Assembly: GCA_965112735.1 (NCBI GenBank)
Contig: OZ218958.1
Location: 1,488,001 to 1,552,000, forward strand
Direction: 5' to 3'
Source: Phaeosaccion multiseriatum
Taxonomy: Eukaryota > Protista > Ochrophyta, other classes
Length of the DNA stretch: 64,000 nucleotides
A model generated the notes under the pieces. That model made no database searches and was not told the origin of the DNA. It was given only the letters and a program-made list of their open reading frames with translations. Positions 3,742-36,329 of the stretch are shown piece after piece. Every line of letters starts with the position of its first letter. Within the stretch, counting starts at the first letter, position 1. A program made the translations under genes and the position numbers.

Positions 3742-6700
3742 ATGGCCGCGAGGAAACGTGCACGGAGCCCAGAGAGCCCGACAAACAGCAACAGGAGGGC
3801 TGATGGGAAGCCGGGAGCGCCTTCTTCGACTGCCAAATCAGCCCCAACCCCCACGCCGGTCACTCGTAGGAGGAAGCGGGAGCGACAGGAGGGGATAGTC
3901 ACGCTCCTCAGCTGGCTGTGCTACCCCTTGGCCGTCACGTGGATCTTGCTCTTCCCAGCCATCACCATCACGACGGGAGAGCTCAAGCCCCGTGGGACTT
4001 TCTTTGACGAGAACGCCATCCTTGTGCATCACACACGCCTGCCCGAGGCCCAAGTGCAGAAGGTACGGAGGTGTTGTGCGATGGAGAGCGCTGAACACTC
4101 ATCAGTGTACCTCATCAAAGCCATTTACCCCCTTCGATGAGTGGATGGATGGATGGACTGACTGATTGATTGATTGGTTATTCCTTCCCCCCTTTGGGTC
4201 GTTCGTGCCTTGCGTTCAAATTGCAACGTACTCGCAAACAACGGCAGGTCGTCCAACATCAAGAGAATAGGAGATATGCGTACCTCCGCGGCGAAGGCCA
4301 GGAAGGAGGGGGGCAGGAGGAAGAGTGTACGAGCGGGTCGAGTGTGCGGCAGTACGTGGAGCGCGAGCTTCGAGACATGGGGCTCCCTGTCTATGAGCAC
4401 CGCTACCGTCGGCCGCTGTACATGCCCGACATGGCCCAGCACCAAGGCGGGGCTGGTAGTGGCCGCACCGACACCGAGAGGCGGAGGTGAGGGAACACTA
4501 GAGCAAGAGGAGGAGGAGGCGGCGGAGGGGGGAGAGAGAGAAAGGTTCGGAGACAGAGGGGTCGGGGGGTGGAAAGGGAAGGGGAATCAGATGGCATAGC
4601 GAGCCACACAGAAGGAAAGGGAGGGAGGGTCGTTATCAGAGACGAGTTGTTATGCAGGTATTCAAGAGGTTAAGCCGGAGGGGGGTTTGTTTCGTCTGAA
4701 CCGAGTTTCAGTCTCAGCTTTTGACGCCGACCAATATCGAGACCTGATATCGATGCCCCCACAGAGGGTTGAACCCGTGTCTTGTGCCCTTTCCCCCTCC
4801 ACCCGCATTCCCTCAACGCCCCGAGTAACCCCATTCTACCCCCCCTCTCTGGCACGCACACCCAGCCTGTTCACCATAATACGGCCGGGAGCGGTGCACA
4901 GTAAGGACTGCCTCGTCCTCGTCATCTCTCAGAACCTGCAGGAGCATATGGGGAGCGGTGTATTAGAAGCAGCGGATGAGGGCAGCAGTAGCGGTGGTGG
5001 TGGTGGTGGTGGTGGTGGTGGTAGCTTGAGTATCTTTCTGTCGGTGGCCGCCTACCTGAGGGAGGCGAGGTGGTTGTCAAGGAATGTTCTCCTTCTCGTG
5101 GCCGATGAAGAGGATTGTCGCGGCAGCAGCGGGTAAGAAGGGCACGGAAACACACACCCACCCGCACACACACACATACACACACACAATCACATGCACG
5201 CACGGTTGAAAATACACACCCTCTCTCTCTCACTCACACACACGTATAAGCACATATACACACACGTGTATGACCGTCCCTTATCGCTTCCTCACCCGTG
5301 TGTATGCTGCTATGGCACAGCTGTGGCACCGGCGAACGCTTGTGTATGCCCGCACGTACGAAGCTCTAGAAATCTCCACCCCCCCTCGCCCATTCGCTGA
5401 CTCACTCACTCACTTGCTCACTCACTCACTCACTCACTCACTCACTCACTCACTTGTTCACTCACTCACTCACTCACTCATAAACGCACCCACTCACTCA
5501 CTCACCCACCCACTCACTCACCCCCTCACTCAATCACTCACTCACCCACCCACCCTCCTCCTCGTCGTCCTTATGCCCGCACGTCTCGGCCCCGTACAGA
5601 GGCGGCTGCGGCAGGAGTAACGGGTACAGCCCGGGTGTAGAGGCCTTTCTCGCGGACTACCACGGCGATGCTATGGAGGCCCTGCATGGCGGGGTGAGTG
5701 AGTGAGTGAGTGAGTGAGTGAGAGAATGGGTGAGTGAGTGAGTGGGTGTTGGAGTGGGTAGTGAGTGAGTGAGTGGGTGAGGGAATGGGTGAGTGAGTGA
5801 GTGGGTGAGGGAGTGGGTGAGTGAGTGAGTGGGTGAGGGAGTTGGTGACTGCGAGGAGTTTATCGGGGCAAGGCATGTACTGATGAAAGCCCTGAGCGAA
5901 ACGTTAATCTACGCTTGTGTATCAGGCTTTCCCTCCACCCAGACCTTGGGCATATACTATTGTCCCTCTCTCAGGGACAACATCGCATCTGCCTTCTTAC
6001 GCGTGTGTGTCTCTTGGGAGATAGGTACGATTGTACCGGGCTCCCTACCTCTCTTCTCAATGCGGGGCCTGACGCTGTCCTCCTCCCCCCCCCCCCCCCA
6101 CTCTCTTTTCTTGCTCTGGACACACACACACACATACAGGGCAACGCGTACCGTACCGCAGGCAGCAACAACAGCACGAGCCCGAGGAGCAGCGCGGAGG
6201 GCCTCGATAATAGCCCTGTCCTGACACCACCCACTGTCTTGGCACCCCCCTTCCTCTTGCTGGATGACCGGGCGAGCACAAGGGCCCTCATGCCAAGAGC
6301 AGGCTACATGCGCGCGGCCCTCACCCTCGACTTCCCACTTGCCAGGAGTAAGGCAGCATCAGCAACAGCAGGACAAGCAGTGTCCGGGTGGGCAGCAGGA
6401 GCAGGAGGAGGAGGGGGAGGGGGAGGAGGAGGAGGGGGAGGGGGAGGAGGAGGAGGAGCAGAGGGGGGAGCGTGGAAGTCTGTGACTGTGCTCACCACGG
6501 GCTTCAACGGACAGCTGCCCAATATGGACCTCCTCAACATGGCGGTCTATCACTTGCGGCGCTCACCCTTCAGGTACAGCGAGTACGGTTACATTTGTGC
6601 CTACCTACTCTTGCGTACGTTCTCTGCTGAGCTGAGCTGAACCGATCTGACCCATGTGTTCGCCCACTCACTCACTCACTCACTCGCTCACTCACTCACT

Positions 6701-9483: not shown

Positions 9484-17693
<8,210 letters not shown>

Positions 17694-28724: not shown

Positions 28725-29031
28725 CGTCCCTCACCCCAAGAGCTTTGCCAATCGATATCTCGCACTTCCCCATCCAACCTTGACAGTTGGTTCTTCAGTC
28801 GTCGCGCCCTTCTTCTCCTCTCGCGACTTTTATCGACTTTTTCCCTTTGATTATCACCTTCCTCTCGCAGCCCTTCATTATTGTTCCGAGGCCTCCTTCG
28901 CCTCTGTCCCCTCTCCTCGCTTGGCTCTCCATATCTACAGGGACGCAAGGGACGAGGACGCATTCCCTGTGGTCAGAGGAGCGCTGCAATCCTAAATCCC
29001 GTTGACCACGCACTCGGCCAAACGTTCTGTC

Positions 29032-30559
29032 ATGATCGATCTGCAGCGTATGCTCGTTCTGGCGTCGATAAGCAGCCTGCTCTTCTCCTCGCCTGCGACC
29101 GGACAGGAGGAACTCACCTGTGAGACTGCTTTCGACGGCAATAGCACCACCAGCGTGACGCTGTCTGGAGACCTGGAATGCGACGTTCCCACCACCTTGG
29201 TTGTGGAGGAGGACGCAGCTGTTACCATCGACGTGAGCGAGGCATCCACCCTGGGTAACCTCCGCTTCATGGTGTTGGGCGGTGCGAGCTTGGTCTTTGA
29301 GAATGAAGGCAGCGAAGTGGAGATGGAGAATAGTTTTTCGGGCTTCCGAGAGCCGGGTGGCGCCATCTCCAACTTTGGCTCAGTGGTGTTTAAGGGAGAT
29401 GCCGCCTTCAGGGGGAATACCGCAGGCACCTTTGGTGGGGCCATTCACATCTTCGCTGGGGGAGAGGTTGTGTTTGAAGGAAAAACAGCCTTCGAGGAGA
29501 ACTTTAGCGAAGCGGATCAGAACGGAGGAGCCGTTTACTGCGAGGGCAGCATCACCTTCATGGACGACGCTGTGTTTATCGACAATGTTGCGCCTGGACT
29601 AGGCTCGGGTGGCGCAGTCTACAACTTTGGAGAAGGGCAGGTGACTTTCGAGAGCAACACCAATTTCGTGGACAATGTGGCCCCTCGCGCGGGTGGAGCC
29701 GTCTTCACACAGGGCCAAAACGCGTCCGTGAGCTTTGGCGGAGATGCCACATTCATCGGAAACCAAGCGGCGCAGACCGACGTGGACCTCGAGGAAGACG
29801 GCAATGGTGGCGCTCTGTACATGGACAATGGCGTCGTGAGCTTTGCTGCGGCTGCGACCTTCCACAACAACACAGCGGTGAGGAGAGAGTTGGTTATTCG
29901 AAGTTCTCGCCGTTCCTTGCCCTTGTACCTAAACGAACTGCCTACACCCCTACCCACCTCTTGCCCTCCCTCCCTCCCTCCCTCCCTCCCTCCCTCCCTT
30001 CCTTCCTTCCTTCCTTCCTTCCTTCCTTCCTTCCTTCCTTCCTTCCTTCCTTCCTTCCTTCCTTCCTTCCTTCCTTCCTTCCTTCCTTCCTTCCTTCCTC
30101 TATACGAACAACGACGCCACTCCCTCTCTTGTCACTCTGTGCCGATACGCCTCTACCCTCATCGCCGTCGCCCCTTGCCCGGTCGTTGGTCGTTCAGGCG
30201 GTGAGTCACTGAGGGGAGAGTGTTTGTCACACAGCGCGCGCGCCTCACTTCCCCAGGCCTATGCGATACGCCTGCCTGCCGGCATGCCCATGTGCCTGCC
30301 CACTGCTGCGGCGCTACTCCGGGGGTGTCACTCACTCGTATCGTTCCTTCCTTCTTCCTTGCTTGGTTGCTGCCCCGCCCCTCTTGAATGCTTACTTGTT
30401 TGCGTCGTCCCTCTTGACTCCAATCCTCGCTCCATCTGGCGACCCATGGCGACCCAACTTCAGAACGTGAGTGCGTCTCTTCCCACCACAGTGACTTGTT
30501 TAGCGTGTGTCTCTCCTCTGTCCTCTCCTTGCCTCCCTCCGTCCCACTCTTCCTCTTTC

Positions 30560-30595
<36 letters not shown>

Positions 30596-30609
30596 ACTCT
30601 TCCTCTTTC

Positions 30610-30652
<43 letters not shown>

Positions 30653-31736
30653 CTGTCTCAATATGTATATGATCTTCAACACTGCTGTCCTATTCCTCCT
30701 GACGCGCCGCTCTTTTGCCTTGGAAGGTGGTGGTACCTCCTTGTTTTGCAAAGCCTTTTGACTGTGACCACTGCATACCATATTTCCGCACTCACTCACT
30801 CACTCACTCACTCACTCACTCACTCATTCACCCTCCCTCCCTCCGTTCCCACGACCACTCCTCCCTCCCTTTGGGCCGAAACGGTCGCCGATTGGCATGT
30901 TTCCCCCTCTCTCCTTTGTTGTCGGGCTTCTCGTGTTTGGGCTTGACCTCTCTTCGTCAGGCGGTGAGTGAGGAGTGTGAGGTGGAAGCCTCGGGATATA
31001 CCGCAGTGCTGGAGAGGGGGGGCTGGGTTGGGTCATGAAAATTTGGGTTAGACATTCCCTCCCTCGCTTGCCTTTACCCCTAAACCGCTCAATCCCTTTC
31101 TTGCCTCACCCACTCACTCACTCACTCACTCACTCACACTCCCTCCCTCCCCCCCCCCCACCCCTCTCTCTAGGGCGGAGGCTTTGCCGCGAGCGATGGA
31201 AGTGTCGTGACTTTCGACGGAGAGGCCTCATTTTCCGGAAACGAAGCCACCGCAAGGGTAAGCAAGACGGTGTGCCCCATGTGTGCGATGGTGTGATGAG
31301 TGAGCAGTGGCGTTGTGAATGAGCTGGGGTGTGATGAGTGAGCTGTGTTGTATTGAGTCAGCTGTGATGAATAAGCTGCTGTTGTCATGAGTCAGCTGTG
31401 GTGAATACGCTGTGTTGTAATGAGTCAGCTGTGATGACTAAGGTGTGATAAATAAGCTGTGATGAATGAGCTGTGGTGTGGTCAGTACGCTGTGGTGTGA
31501 TGAGTATGCTGTGGTGTAATCAGTGAGCTGTGATGAGTCAGCGGTGGTGTAATGAGCGAGGTGTGATTCCCACGGTCTTGGCGCTGTAGGCCACGTTGCT
31601 GCTGCGTTGCCTCACTGGTTCTCTTCTCACCACGCCTCCGTCGTGCTGCACCGCCTGCTCTTACCCTCCCCATACGCGCGCACGTGTGTGCATGTGTGAC
31701 TCTCCATCTTTCTGTGTGTTTGTGTCTGTGTCCATT

Positions 31737-31768
<32 letters not shown>

Positions 31769-33430
31769 TGGCACATAGGGAGGCGGCTTTTCTGTAGGGA
31801 ACACCTCTGAAGCGACGTTCGGCGCAGATGTCGCATTCGACTACAATAGAGCGGTGAGTGAGTGAGCGCGAGGAGTAGTGATAGGACAGGCAGACAGACA
31901 GGCAGGCAGATAGGCAGGCAGACAGGCAGATAGGCAGGCAGGCAGACAGACAGACAGACAGAGGCATATGGGCAGACAGACAGAAGTACAAACAGACAGA
32001 CGGACAGACAGACAGACAGGCAAACAGACAGAGAGCTCATGCATGCCGTGGCTGCGTCTTGGCTCGGAGCCCCCCTCATCGAATCATCCTCCCCTGCTCT
32101 CCTCTCCTTTCCCGTTGTCCTGTTCATATTTCTATACGTACATACGTAACATCCATATTCTTCATGGCCTCCGCCCCACGACACAGAGCGTAAGTGGTAC
32201 TATTTCCAGACGCACACACACACACACACACACACATACACACACATACACACACACACACATACACACACACACACACACACACATACACACATACGCA
32301 CACACTCACAGGGCAAGGGCGGGTAGCGGCAGCGTACTCTCATCTTTCTGCGTGGTAGTGGTGTATGGTCCTAACACAATTTGTGTGCTCGACGAGGAGC
32401 ACTTGTTTATCATCCGTCCGCACAAGTTTTTCCTCTACTCTCTACTTCCTCATCATGCGTTCCCTCTGTTGTCCTCTCCTGTCGTCTGTCCGACCTTGGC
32501 GTTGCTCTCTGTCCGACCTTGGTGTTGCTCTCTGTCCGACCTTGGCGTTGCTCTCTGTCCGACCTTGGTGTTGCGGTCCGCCCCCTTTCTGATGTGTGTG
32601 CGCTTTTGGGTCTCACCCCTCTCTCCCTGGGCACGTCACTTCAACAGGAGGTGAGTCTAAGAGGAGGAGACAGAGAGAGCGGAGGAGGAGAGAGGGAGAG
32701 AGAGAAGGAGGGTGGGTGGGACAGAGTAGAGCGAGCGATAGGGTGGGTGGGAGAGGCGGCGGCAGCGACGTGTCTCGTCAGAGTAGGCGACAGGGCAGGA
32801 GTCCGTTAGATTAGGCCGCTTGCCTCTCCCCTAACCGCATTCACCCACCTACCTGCCTACCTACTACCTACCTACCTACCTACCTACCTACCTACCTACC
32901 TTCCTACCTACCTACCTACCTACCTTTCTACCTACCTACCTACCTACGTACCTACCTACCTACCTACCTACCTACGTACCTACCTACCTACGTACCTACT
33001 TACCTACCTACCTACCTACCTACCTACCTACCTACCTACCTACCTACCTACCTACCTACCTACCTACCTACCTACCTACCTACCTACCTACCTACCTGCC
33101 TACCTACTTATCCCTCCTGCGCCATCGTAGGGACCTGAGTACTTCGAAGACGACGGCTCGACCCTCACCTTCGAAGGGGAGGTCGAAACCGCCCCCACCC
33201 CCGTGCCCACCCCTGGACCGACGTCGGAATCCTCTCCTCGGTGTACGGAGGATACTTCCGGAGGTGGGAGGAGAGCGGCCGACTGTGTTGACGATGGTGA
33301 CGAGGTGGACGCCAACACAACCGACGGGGGCATCAAGTCGGCTGCGCTGCCTTCGCTGACGGTGGTGGTGAGTTCAGTGCTTGTATGTCTGTGGACCTTC
33401 TCTGCGTCCTCCGCGGCTGGCTGTGTTTAG
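29032..33430 (+). CDS. Polymorphic-membrane-protein-like (FxxN/GGA[IVL]) beta-helix surface protein with signal peptide and a hydrophobic, possibly GPI, C-terminus
   Basis: Signal [18 protein letters not shown]; repeats [41 protein letters not shown]. Main exons 29032-29877, 31174-31257, 31779-31853, 33131-33430, plus five putative 3-nt exons (30198-30200, 30464-30466, 30961-30963, 32187-32189, 32648-32650). Confidence 0.8.
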
Positions 33431-33985: not shown

Positions 33986-36329
33986 CTAGAACTCGAACGT
34001 CTCGCTGTGTGTATGGAAGGACACCCCATTTCCACAGGCATGTCCCGTGCAGCCCGCTGCCACTGCTTGCATGAAGCGCTGCGGCCCGCACGCCATCACG
34101 GCAACCCTCTTAATGCCCTTGCTGACCTTGTCGGCTCGAGCTCGCTCCCCCTGTAAGGCTAGGAGCGCCTTGGGTGAGGGGCGACCGACGTGCACTGCCA
34201 CCCCGGCGTCGTCCCACACGGCGCCATCCGTTCCTGCCCCTCCTCCTCCTCCTCCTCCTCCTCCTCCTGCTCCTCCTCCTCCTGCTCCTCCTCCTGCTGC
34301 TGCAACTGTGCCAGTAAGGGCCTCGTCCACTCCGTTGTTGGCGATGTTCACCATCTTGAGCAGCGTCGCGGCCTTTTCTGAAACGGCAGCCGCGTCTCCA
34401 TCCTTGGTCACATACACCTCCAAACGGAAGGTGCAGCCACAGCCTGAGCCGAGCTTGTTCACTCTCTGTATCCTGGCCAGGTCGGAGGCGAACCACTGCA
34501 AACACGACACTTGTGGCACCGTCCAATAGAGGGTCACCTCCCGCACGTCGCCTCTGGTGATCTTGCTGCCGGTGGTGTTGGTGTTGGTGGTGATGGTGGT
34601 GGTGGTGGTGGTGGTGGTGGCAGCGCTGTTGTGGTTTTGGGTCCTCTCGGCACGCCCAAGGAGGTCCAGAAAGACGGACATGAGGGGTGTTACTCCTATC
34701 CCGGCACCGAAGAGAGCGATGGAGTCGTGAAGCTCGTACGGGACCGCGGGGTGGCCTGGTGAAGGGGAAGGAGAGAAGGGGGTGGGGGGGGGGGTGAATG
34801 CGGGGGTGGCGGTGGCGCGATCACTTCTCGCCCGTCTCGGTATACACATGGACGACTTTTCTCTCCCTCTCTCTCAACCATCCCCTCTGTAGGTAGGACC
34901 TTGCCCTCACTCTCTCATATATGGGGTCTTTCTTGTTGCATACCATAAGGTCCATTGATGCGGATGGGGTCCCGTTGCGCGCGAAGCAGGACAAGTGCTT
35001 TGGACCAGCCGCCAAGCCCTTTGATGTGGAAGCGGACAATGCCGGACCCGTCTGGAGAGGAGGTTACGGAAATGGGATGCCACTCCAGCCACGAGATGCT
35101 CGGGAAGTTGAGGAAGGCGTAACTGCCCGCCTCGTAACCGTGCACACGGTCGGCGGCTGACCACTTTGCTTCGAGCACAACCACGTCGTCGTCAAGCACC
35201 ATCACACGCTGATAGGATGGGGCACAAGTGGGACGCAGGGCGTTGAGGGAGGGCGCAATTGTGGGAGCGTGAGTGAACACAAAGTAAAAGAATTAAGCTC
35301 TATACACAGCTGCAGGGAAGATGCAGCACGTGGAAAGAGTGAAGGCAAAAACGCATTACATTTGCCACCACTGCCCCTCCTCCTCACCTCAATAGAAGCC
35401 GAGGTGTGTGCCCTGATGAAGCGAATGACACAGTCAATGGCCAGCAGAACCACACTGAAGGCTACGGCACTAGCCGTCTGCCCGGTATGGAGCACAGCCA
35501 GGATGACAAAGAGCCAAGTGAGGACAAGGTGGGAGATGTAGAACAGCTCGAAGAAGAGTCTTCGCACGGGCGGGATGGCGAGGAGGAAGAAGCCAATGTA
35601 CACTGTGGGAGCGGATGCGTATATGAGGATCGAGGGCAGAAGACAGGGGGCAGGGGGCGGGCGGTGGGTCAGGATGCGCTGAGCCAGCAAAGCACAGAGG
35701 AGGCCGCGATACAGCCCAACAGGAGAGCTCCCACCCGCCACTGCTGCTCTACGTAGCCTGCTACACAGCAGACAACCACATCCCTTACCGATGAGTGCGG
35801 CGTTGCCCGTAAGGTAGTACTCGCCGTCGAAGGAGAGGCTGAACCAACCCTCGTTGTGGTAGTGAGCATGATAGAAAAGTGGAAAGGCCATGGCCATACC
35901 CAGCCATCTGTGGAATTTGAGGAGCCTCTCGTAGCTGCAGCCGAAGAGCACAGTGAGGATGTTGTTTCGGGCCGCCAGGAGGAGCACAAGTGCCATGAAT
36001 CGTGTGGTGACCCCCCCGTAGCCGAGGTCGTCGTCGTCCCCAGAGTCCGAGTCCATCCGTCGTCTCCTGCTGTCGTCTCCACCACTATCATCTCCGCTGT
36101 CCCCACTATCGCCATCGCCTCCTCCTCCAGTCAGCAGTAGAGCGGCGAGGATGAGCGTGGTGAGGAGAGCTTCTGCCAGAGTCGCCGAGAAGCCTCCCGT
36201 GAAGGGGATGCGAAGAGGCCGATGCATCCAGGTGAGATCATTGAGAACCGAAAGGGCCTTGTCGCGAGGAAGAGAGCATGACGCTCCAGAGTAGTGCCCC
36301 GCCTCCGTTCCCTGATGAACTGAAGCCAT
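33986..36329 (-). CDS. Ferric reductase / NADPH-oxidase family flavocytochrome
   Basis: Heme-ligand motifs FHRWLG..YHAHYH and FYISHL..LHT; FAD motif EWHPISVTSSP; INGPYG; NADPH motif LFGAGIGVTP; VMACGP; terminal HSETFEF. Four exons; an additional upstream exon is possible. Confidence 0.9.

Follow-up and report, generated by a model that had tools for sequence, protein, structure and literature searches.

Whether exons of a single codon can follow one another in a gene, each separated from the next by an intron of full size, is the question raised by a locus in a 64,000-nucleotide (nt) stretch of the ochrophyte Phaeosaccion multiseriatum (assembly GCA_965112735.1, contig OZ218958.1, positions 1,488,001 to 1,552,000, forward strand). 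This whole stretch is referred to as the window, and its own numbering is used throughout. The gene in question, at 29032-33430 on the + strand, encodes a predicted beta-helix protein resembling the polymorphic membrane proteins (PMP) of Chlamydia. An earlier note on this DNA had proposed that the first and the last of the long gaps between its large exons are divided by 3-nt micro-exons, three in gap 1 (starting at 30198, 30464 and 30961) and two in gap 2 (32187-32189 and 32648-32650). We found that both micro-exons of the second chain are present, consecutively, in the dominant mRNA, and that position 32651 is used as a donor. That these single-codon exons are real rather than chance motifs is thus established by RNA for the second chain; for the first chain it is strongly indicated, and predicted. 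We conclude, with a probability of about 0.8, that the gene contains five one-codon exons in two chains, spliced intron by intron and included constitutively.

Exon-intron organization of the gene

The gene comprises nine coding exons, five of which are single codons (GCG, AAC and GCG, then AGC and GAG) that together account for 15 of about 1,320 coding nt. All eight introns are in phase 0, have GT-AG borders and measure 210-521 nt. Exon 1 is contained in an open reading frame (ORF) at 29002-30204 that extends into intron 1a; we infer that translation starts at the first ATG of this ORF, at 29032, and the 5' and 3' ends of the gene are predicted. With all five micro-exons spliced in, the frame is open to the stop codon at 33428-33430, and the predicted product has about 439 residues. 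The features are as follows, all on the + strand; X14 is an RNA-type sequencing run, and records 14 and 15 are two of its assembled contigs.

29032-29877, +: exon 1; signal-peptide-like N-terminus and six PMP-type rungs, ending in AAC ACA GCG (N-T-A); 95% of sampled words found in run X14
29878-30197, +: intron 1a; 320 nt, GTGAGG...CAG, predicted; acceptor after a 294-nt AG-free tract
30198-30200, +: micro-exon 1, predicted; GCG (Ala), CAG GCG GTGAGT at 30195-30206
30201-30463, +: intron 1b; 263 nt, GTGAGT...CAG; 207-nt AG-free tract, purine content resets at the 5' end
30464-30466, +: micro-exon 2, predicted; AAC (Asn), CAG AAC GTGAGT at 30461-30472
30467-30960, +: intron 1c; 494 nt, GTGAGT...CAG; 207-nt AG-free tract, X14 RNA depth 0
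30961-30963, +: micro-exon 3, predicted; GCG (Ala), CAG GCG GTGAGT at 30958-30969
30964-31173, +: intron 1d; 210 nt, GTGAGT...TAG; purine-to-pyrimidine polarity 0.70 to 0.17, 122-nt AG-free tract
31174-31257, +: exon 2; 84 nt, one rung (GGGFAASDG...NEATAR); X14 record 14 over 31176-31258, no mismatch
31258-31778, +: intron 2; 521 nt, GTAAGC...TAG, undivided, internal control; spliced out in X14 record 14
31779-31853, +: exon 3; 75 nt, one rung (GGGFSVGN...DYNRA); X14 record 14 over 31781-31853
31854-32186, +: intron 3a; 333 nt, GTGAGT...CAG; missing from the X14 transcript contig; 117-nt AG-free tract
32187-32189, +: micro-exon 4; AGC (Ser), CAG AGC GTAAGT at 32184-32195; in mRNA (X14 record 14)
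32190-32647, +: intron 3b; 458 nt, GTAAGT...CAG; out in record 14, kept from 32511 on in record 15; 221-nt AG-free tract
32648-32650, +: micro-exon 5; GAG (Glu), CAG GAG GTGAGT at 32645-32656; in mRNA (X14 records 14 and 15)
32651-33130, +: intron 3c; 480 nt, GTGAGT...TAG; out in both X14 contigs; 316-nt AG-free tract
33131-33430, +: last coding exon (exon 4); GPEYFEDDG..., stalk, tail and stop; X14 record 14 has its first 24 nt after AGCGAG

Two consecutive one-codon exons in the mRNA

The sequencing runs that contain the locus come from one 2024 sample (S8), and the evidence consists of assembled contigs aligned over 30100-32860. Runs X9, X10 and X13 of this sample span the introns and are thus DNA-like, so that an assembly error in the genomic sequence is excluded. 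A further run of the sample, X14, gave spliced contigs, lacks intron coverage and behaves as RNA. In its record 14 (1,563 nt, depth 149), exons 2 and 3 are matched perfectly and 31258-31778 is missing. The letters that follow 31853 are AGCGAGGGACCTGAGTACTTCGAAGACGAC, made up of AGC, GAG and the 24 letters with which exon 4 starts at 33131. The junction that had been predicted, AGAGCG-AGCGAG-GGACCTGAG, is therefore present in an assembled X14 transcript, and a direct junction between 31853 and 33131, named beforehand as the outcome that would refute the proposal, is excluded for the dominant mRNA. Gap 2 holds one AG|AGC|GY site and one AG|GAG|GY site, both at the predicted positions, so that the six inserted letters map uniquely. 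A second contig, record 15 (151 nt, depth 5.9), covers 32511-32651 and then reads GACCTGAGTA: it joins 32650 to 33131 and retains intron 3b.

Other data sets were considered. Runs X1-X8 were rejected as RNA support: they contain only 5-6% of the words, belong to different organisms and probably match through microsatellite words. Metagenome contigs were scanned for either junction, allowing 0-9 or 0-6 free letters between its two sides; nothing was found, a result that is uninformative because the junction proven by RNA is equally absent from them.

Splice signals at the five sites

Direct reading of the sequence confirmed a CAG|NNN|GTRAGT signal at each of the five positions. The pattern YAGNNNGTRAGT has 15 matches on both strands of the window, compared with 1.74 ± 1.27 (maximum 5) in 100 dinucleotide shuffles. 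Nine of the remaining ten matches lie inside (GTGA)n/(GGGA)n microsatellites and the tenth, a donor-like match at 11225, is at the head of such a run; outside repeats, the only matches in the window are the five in the PMP-like gene. From the shuffles, about 0.035 sites are expected in both gaps together (2,573 nt, one strand), giving a Poisson probability of about 4e-10 for at least five. In gap 1 (1,296 nt) three exact 12-nt signals compare with about 0.018 expected. When YAG-GTRAGT spacings of 0-15 nt were surveyed in the window, no other spacing showed a comparable excess outside repeats. The GTRAGT hexamers in the gaps all lie exactly 3 nt after a CAG, except those at the start of gap 2 (31854 and 31858), and in gap 1 both these hexamers and AG-N3-GTRAG sites occur only at the three micro-exon positions.

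All five micro-exons combine a CAG acceptor (30196, 30462, 30959, 32185 and 32646) with a perfect GTRAGT donor. The large downstream exons have TAG acceptors in all three cases (31172, 31777 and 33129); of the three large-exon donors, GTGAGG and GTAAGC depart from GTRAGT. As had been noted, the sites cut the gaps into introns of normal size: the sub-introns measure 320, 263, 494, 210, 333, 458 and 480 nt, to be compared with 521 nt for the undivided intron 2. The latter, whose upstream exon already codes for a linker (TAR), was said to be free of such sites, and indeed no AG-Nk-GTRAG site was detected inside it (spacings 1-9, 12 and 15 tested).

The host genome is GC-rich and microsatellite-rich. 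A 103-nt microsatellite occupies 29997-30099 within intron 1a. At 31280-31560 in intron 2, units of about 19 nt (GTGATGAGTSAGCTGTG-like) form a degenerate tandem repeat, the other introns carrying simple microsatellites. Elsewhere in the window, long (GTGA)n/(GGGA)n arrays at 15045-15217 (- strand) and at 5697-5830 and 11232-11520 (+ strand) start at or near 5' splice sites. Such arrays yield many false splice-motif matches, for example seven YAGTGAGTGAGT (six with CAG, one with TAG) on the minus strand.

The first chain

The three sites of gap 1 were examined for the marks of working splice sites. Each of their acceptors closes an AG-free tract, 294, 207 and 207 nt long respectively. With 29 AGs in the gap, these rank among its four longest internal tracts (chance about 1e-3). 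The two acceptors proven by RNA show the same property, as they end the two longest internal AG-free tracts among about 92 AGs in their gap; at the three large-exon acceptors the tracts measure 122, 189 and 316 nt. Moreover, purine content jumps and then falls at each site, so that every sub-intron has a purine-rich head and a pyrimidine-rich tail. The depth of X14 is 0 over 30100-31122, which indicates that no larger exon is hidden there. The case is indirect but draws on independent lines: together with the motif, the linkers of the protein and the undivided intron 2, these data make it very probable that all three micro-exons of the first chain are used. Full splicing of this chain would place GCGAACGCG between ...ACAGCG and GGCGGAGGC, corresponding to GCGAACGCGGGCGGAGGC after 29877.

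Another AG in intron 1c, at 30725-30726 (CTCTTTTGCCTTGGAAG|GTGGTGG, 30700-30740), lies at the end of an AG-free tract of 223 nt, which only one other tract in the gap exceeds, and abuts a GT. It may act as a recursive site of zero length that divides the 494-nt intron into parts of 260 and 234 nt, or be a coincidence; its donor, GTGGTG, is weak.

The inserted codons complete linkers of a predicted beta-helix

The predicted protein consists of a signal-peptide-like N-terminus, eight PMP-type beta-helix rungs, a degenerate ninth segment (GPEY), a Pro/Thr-rich stalk and a hydrophobic C-terminal tail of about 25 residues; it looks secreted or surface-bound. The earlier assignment to a PMP-like beta-helix family is supported by a Pfam match of exon 1 to Chlam_PMP (PF02415; 53.7 bits for a gathering cut-off of 20.6, E=8.6e-15) and by an AlphaFold model computed from an alignment that includes seven homologues, in which each rung of about 28 residues has three short strands (predicted local distance difference test, pLDDT, 84-98 over residues 110-282). 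In a Foldseek comparison with solved structures every match was a beta-helix or solenoid and none was significant (best E 0.07); the parallel beta-helix fold thus stands as a prediction of the model, with no significant structural match. No autotransporter beta-barrel was found in the Pfam scan of exon 1, and the remaining protein is too short to form one.

The closest database relative, P0001 (L001:570-1805), is 32% identical to the exon 1 query and comes from a transcript contig of a low-GC organism. It shares the identical string AAATFHNN, and it has nine contiguous residues, FLNILAKSE, where the gene has TA and the three one-codon exons. The source organism's own proteins are absent from the homologue collection searched with exon 1, and an exact look-up of a neighbouring single-exon ORF found no record.

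What do the micro-exons contribute to this protein? Linkers of three residues between N-x-A and GG, cited in the proposal, are indeed found in the translated exons. With the micro-exons, the two linkers concerned read NTA-A-N-A-GGGF and NRA-S-E-GPEY, and the rungs measure 26, 30, 28, 28, 38, 27, 28 and 27 residues. Without them, two rungs fall to 24 and 25 residues, below all others, and both are restored to 27 by the inserted codons. The consensus of the seven homologues shows a recurrent N-x-A-xxx-GGA in which the linker always has at least 2 residues. NTA-ANA-GGGF agrees with this consensus, whereas NTA-GGGF, the product of direct joining, does not. The codons of the micro-exons are thus an ordinary linker of two or three residues. 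To speak of variable loops, as had been done, is an overstatement, since the inserted residues give both linkers the usual length of the family.

At the other end of the protein, in the last coding exon just upstream of the hydrophobic tail, GTGGTG|GTGAGT (33360-33372) could serve as an alternative donor, whose use would replace the membrane or glycosylphosphatidylinositol-like tail. X14 record 14 reaches 1,049 nt past exon 3. A convergent gene (34850-34945, - strand), ferric-reductase/NADPH-oxidase-like (Pfam Ferric_reduct and NAD_binding_6), lies tail to tail with the PMP-like gene; with an unspliced 3' untranslated region, the PMP-like transcript would overlap the 3' end of this gene.

Proposed splicing of adjacent one-codon exons

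Introns in the size class of 210-521 nt are normally recognised across the intron. The introns of this gene would then be recognised singly rather than through exon definition, and with recognition across the intron a 3-nt exon needs no exon definition. The one obstacle left would be steric: the established footprints of U1 and U2AF span all 3 nt of the codon. With an acceptor AG and the next donor GT only 3 nt apart, the two sites are therefore not plausibly occupied together, which suggests that neighbouring introns are removed in turn. Once one of the neighbouring introns has left, the codon would belong to an exon of normal size: after removal of intron 3c, for instance, a 303-nt exon would begin with GAG. 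Record 15 represents this state: it has lost the downstream intron and keeps the upstream one, which shows that the downstream intron can be the first to go. We infer that the removal of one neighbour before the other is obligatory. The perfect CAG and GTRAGT signals present at every micro-exon may compensate for the absent exon context. The unusual exon recognition invoked in the earlier note is not required, as record 15 fits an ordinary intron-by-intron removal.

Several points weigh against this reading. The position of AGC rests on the unique mapping of its motif, without an intermediate like that of GAG, and the removal order rests on one low-depth contig. All RNA data derive from one sample and from assembled contigs rather than raw reads. 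With 31096-31175 masked as a repeat, the RNA read-out covers the junctions from exon 2 onward, downstream of 30198, 30464 and 30961. The AG-free tracts and the polarity are partly a reflection of the pyrimidine microsatellites themselves. Finally, contig assembly drops minor isoforms: inclusion appears constitutive, the full-inclusion form being the only one among the X14 contigs, but rare forms would have been lost.

This last point bears directly on the possibility, raised in the earlier note, that the micro-exons are cassettes, included or skipped independently so that the linker loops vary residue by residue. Since all eight introns are in phase 0, every combination would be in frame; the apparent location of the protein at the surface or outside the cell would suit such a function, and linkers among the rungs of this protein do range from 3 to 12 residues. 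However, the only junction assembled, at a depth of 149, is that of full inclusion, and no skipped junction occurs in the X14 contigs, in which rare forms are invisible. After skipping, moreover, 0-2 linker residues would be left, a length that does not exceed the shortest in the family consensus, and the perfect consensus signals resemble those of constitutive exons. We therefore regard independent skipping as unlikely. It is also rather improbable that only the second chain is real, gap 1 being joined directly or using one or two of its three sites while the others serve as decoys or intermediates. X14 indeed gave no letters for the junction upstream of 31174, and direct joining would be in frame. 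Against this, three exact signals crowd gap 1 at more than chance frequency, an identical signal is proven functional 1-2 kb downstream in the same transcript, AG-free tracts and polarity mark each site as a working acceptor and donor, and NTA|GGGF without a linker does not occur in the homologue consensus.

Two explanations would dispense with micro-exons altogether. The adjacent acceptor and donor inside an apparent intron of 1.3 kb, in gaps roughly three times as long as the other intron, could be recursive ('ratchet') splice sites at which a long intron is removed stepwise and nothing remains in the mRNA. At a genuine ratchet point AG and GT abut. For the second chain this is refuted by the six letters AGCGAG retained between exon 3 and exon 4, and for the locus as a whole we consider it very improbable. 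Alternatively, the motifs could be chance by-products of microsatellite-rich introns, which is how the ten other matches of the window arise. The five sites lie outside repeats and are far in excess of expectation, and two of them are used in RNA; the explanation is thus refuted for 32187 and 32648, and the likelihood that it accounts for the locus is negligible. Five one-codon exons, constitutively included and with their flanking introns removed one at a time, remain our preferred interpretation.

Origin of the one-codon exons

As the linkers are needed by the fold, the simplest history starts from contiguous ancestral codons: an uninterrupted ...GCG GCG AAC GCG GGC... would have gained four introns within nine nt, and the second chain three within six. 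The clustering of four intron positions in only 9 nt suggests a strong local bias, either in how introns are gained or in how they are split.

Sequence hints of two kinds were considered and not counted as evidence. Insertion with a target-site duplication would account for the repeats flanking introns, GCGGTGAG on both sides of intron 1a and AGAGCG at intron 3a. Cross-controls between unrelated junctions gave matches of equal or greater length, since the exons close with GCG (Ala) and the donor consensus comes next. Duplication of a micro-exon cassette was suggested by the 13 nt shared by micro-exons 1 and 3 (TCAGGCGGTGAGT); nine of these are fixed by the motif, and the flanks cannot be aligned, which leaves such a duplication unsupported.

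At intron 3a itself, the end of exon 3 reads TAG AGCG GTGAGT (31847-31859) and micro-exon 4 reads CAG AGC GTAAGT (32184-32196), so that AGAGCG stands at both ends of the intron. The resulting AG-AGCG-AGCG-AG in the mRNA may be the footprint of a duplication, but the controls were no weaker.

Significance

These results bear on the limits of splicing. They indicate that 3-nt exons can succeed one another with full-sized introns between them, in proportions of three introns per six coding nt and, as predicted for the first chain, four introns per nine. The locus is thus relevant to the packing density of introns and to the way in which the spliceosome handles an acceptor and the next donor 3 nt apart. 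It also concerns gene annotation: a standard gene model would connect the large exons with nothing between them and give a product short by five residues, and as such a junction is in frame the error would raise no flag. Run X14, which is RNA-like and derives from the sample used for the assembly, can be used for other micro-exon candidates of this genome.

It is tempting to imagine that chains of one-codon exons are systematic in this organism, created by repeated close intron gain at the linkers of repeat proteins and skippable to vary surface loops; we hold this to be unlikely. If true, such skippable one-codon units would represent a new route to protein diversity and would offer a natural case of neighbouring spliceosomes that must take turns.

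Comparison with known systems

The encoded protein shares with the polymorphic membrane proteins of Chlamydia (PF02415) the repeated GGA[ILV] and FxxN motifs, rungs predicted to form a three-stranded parallel beta-helix, and a location outside the cell. In contrast to these bacterial proteins, it is encoded by a eukaryotic gene with introns, and has a signal-peptide-like start and a hydrophobic C-terminal tail instead of an autotransporter barrel.

In the micro-exon genes (MEGs) of Schistosoma, which encode secreted proteins, exons of 6-36 nt account for most of the coding sequence, and alternative splicing has been documented. The gene described here resembles them in coding for an apparently secreted protein and in having symmetric, in-frame micro-exons that are skippable in principle. 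Its micro-exons, however, make up a minute share of the coding sequence, and no alternative form was seen among the contigs. A different likeness is found in recursive splicing at ratchet points, known from Drosophila Ubx and other long introns, where juxtaposed acceptor and donor sites allow stepwise removal and no nucleotides are left in the mRNA. Juxtaposed acceptor and donor signals in a long gap and partly spliced intermediates are common to both systems, whereas here three coding letters per site are kept in the mRNA, as seen in the second chain.

The closest parallel is with ultra-short micro-exons, a class of exons of 15 nt or less. In plants and animals these include the 1-nt exons of APC11 and VPS55 and adjacent exons of 5 nt and 12 nt in a peptidase M1 gene, which have been verified (PMC8831610, PMC11096116, PMC4674806). 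Exons of 3 nt are present in Drosophila hth (PMC7392893), and human RPS24 has three consecutive micro-exons of 3, 18 and 22 bp (PMC12207440). In a literature search on neighbouring micro-exons and on exons of 3 nt, we found single 3-nt exons and mixed chains and no consecutive run of 3-nt exons, which is not proof of its absence. All five micro-exons of the PMP-like gene have canonical YAG/GT flanks and keep the frame and the family pattern, and 32187-32189 and 32648-32650 are in the mature mRNA. Like the plant and animal examples, they have canonical AG/GT flanks, are missed by standard annotation and are needed for frame or motif. They share a GTRAGT donor with the 1-nt exons of plants, for which compensation by strong splice signals has been reported (PMC8831610). 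What sets this gene apart from the plant and animal cases is the succession of one-codon exons, two proven and three predicted, separated by introns of 210-494 nt and located at the linkers of a repeat protein in a microbial eukaryote.

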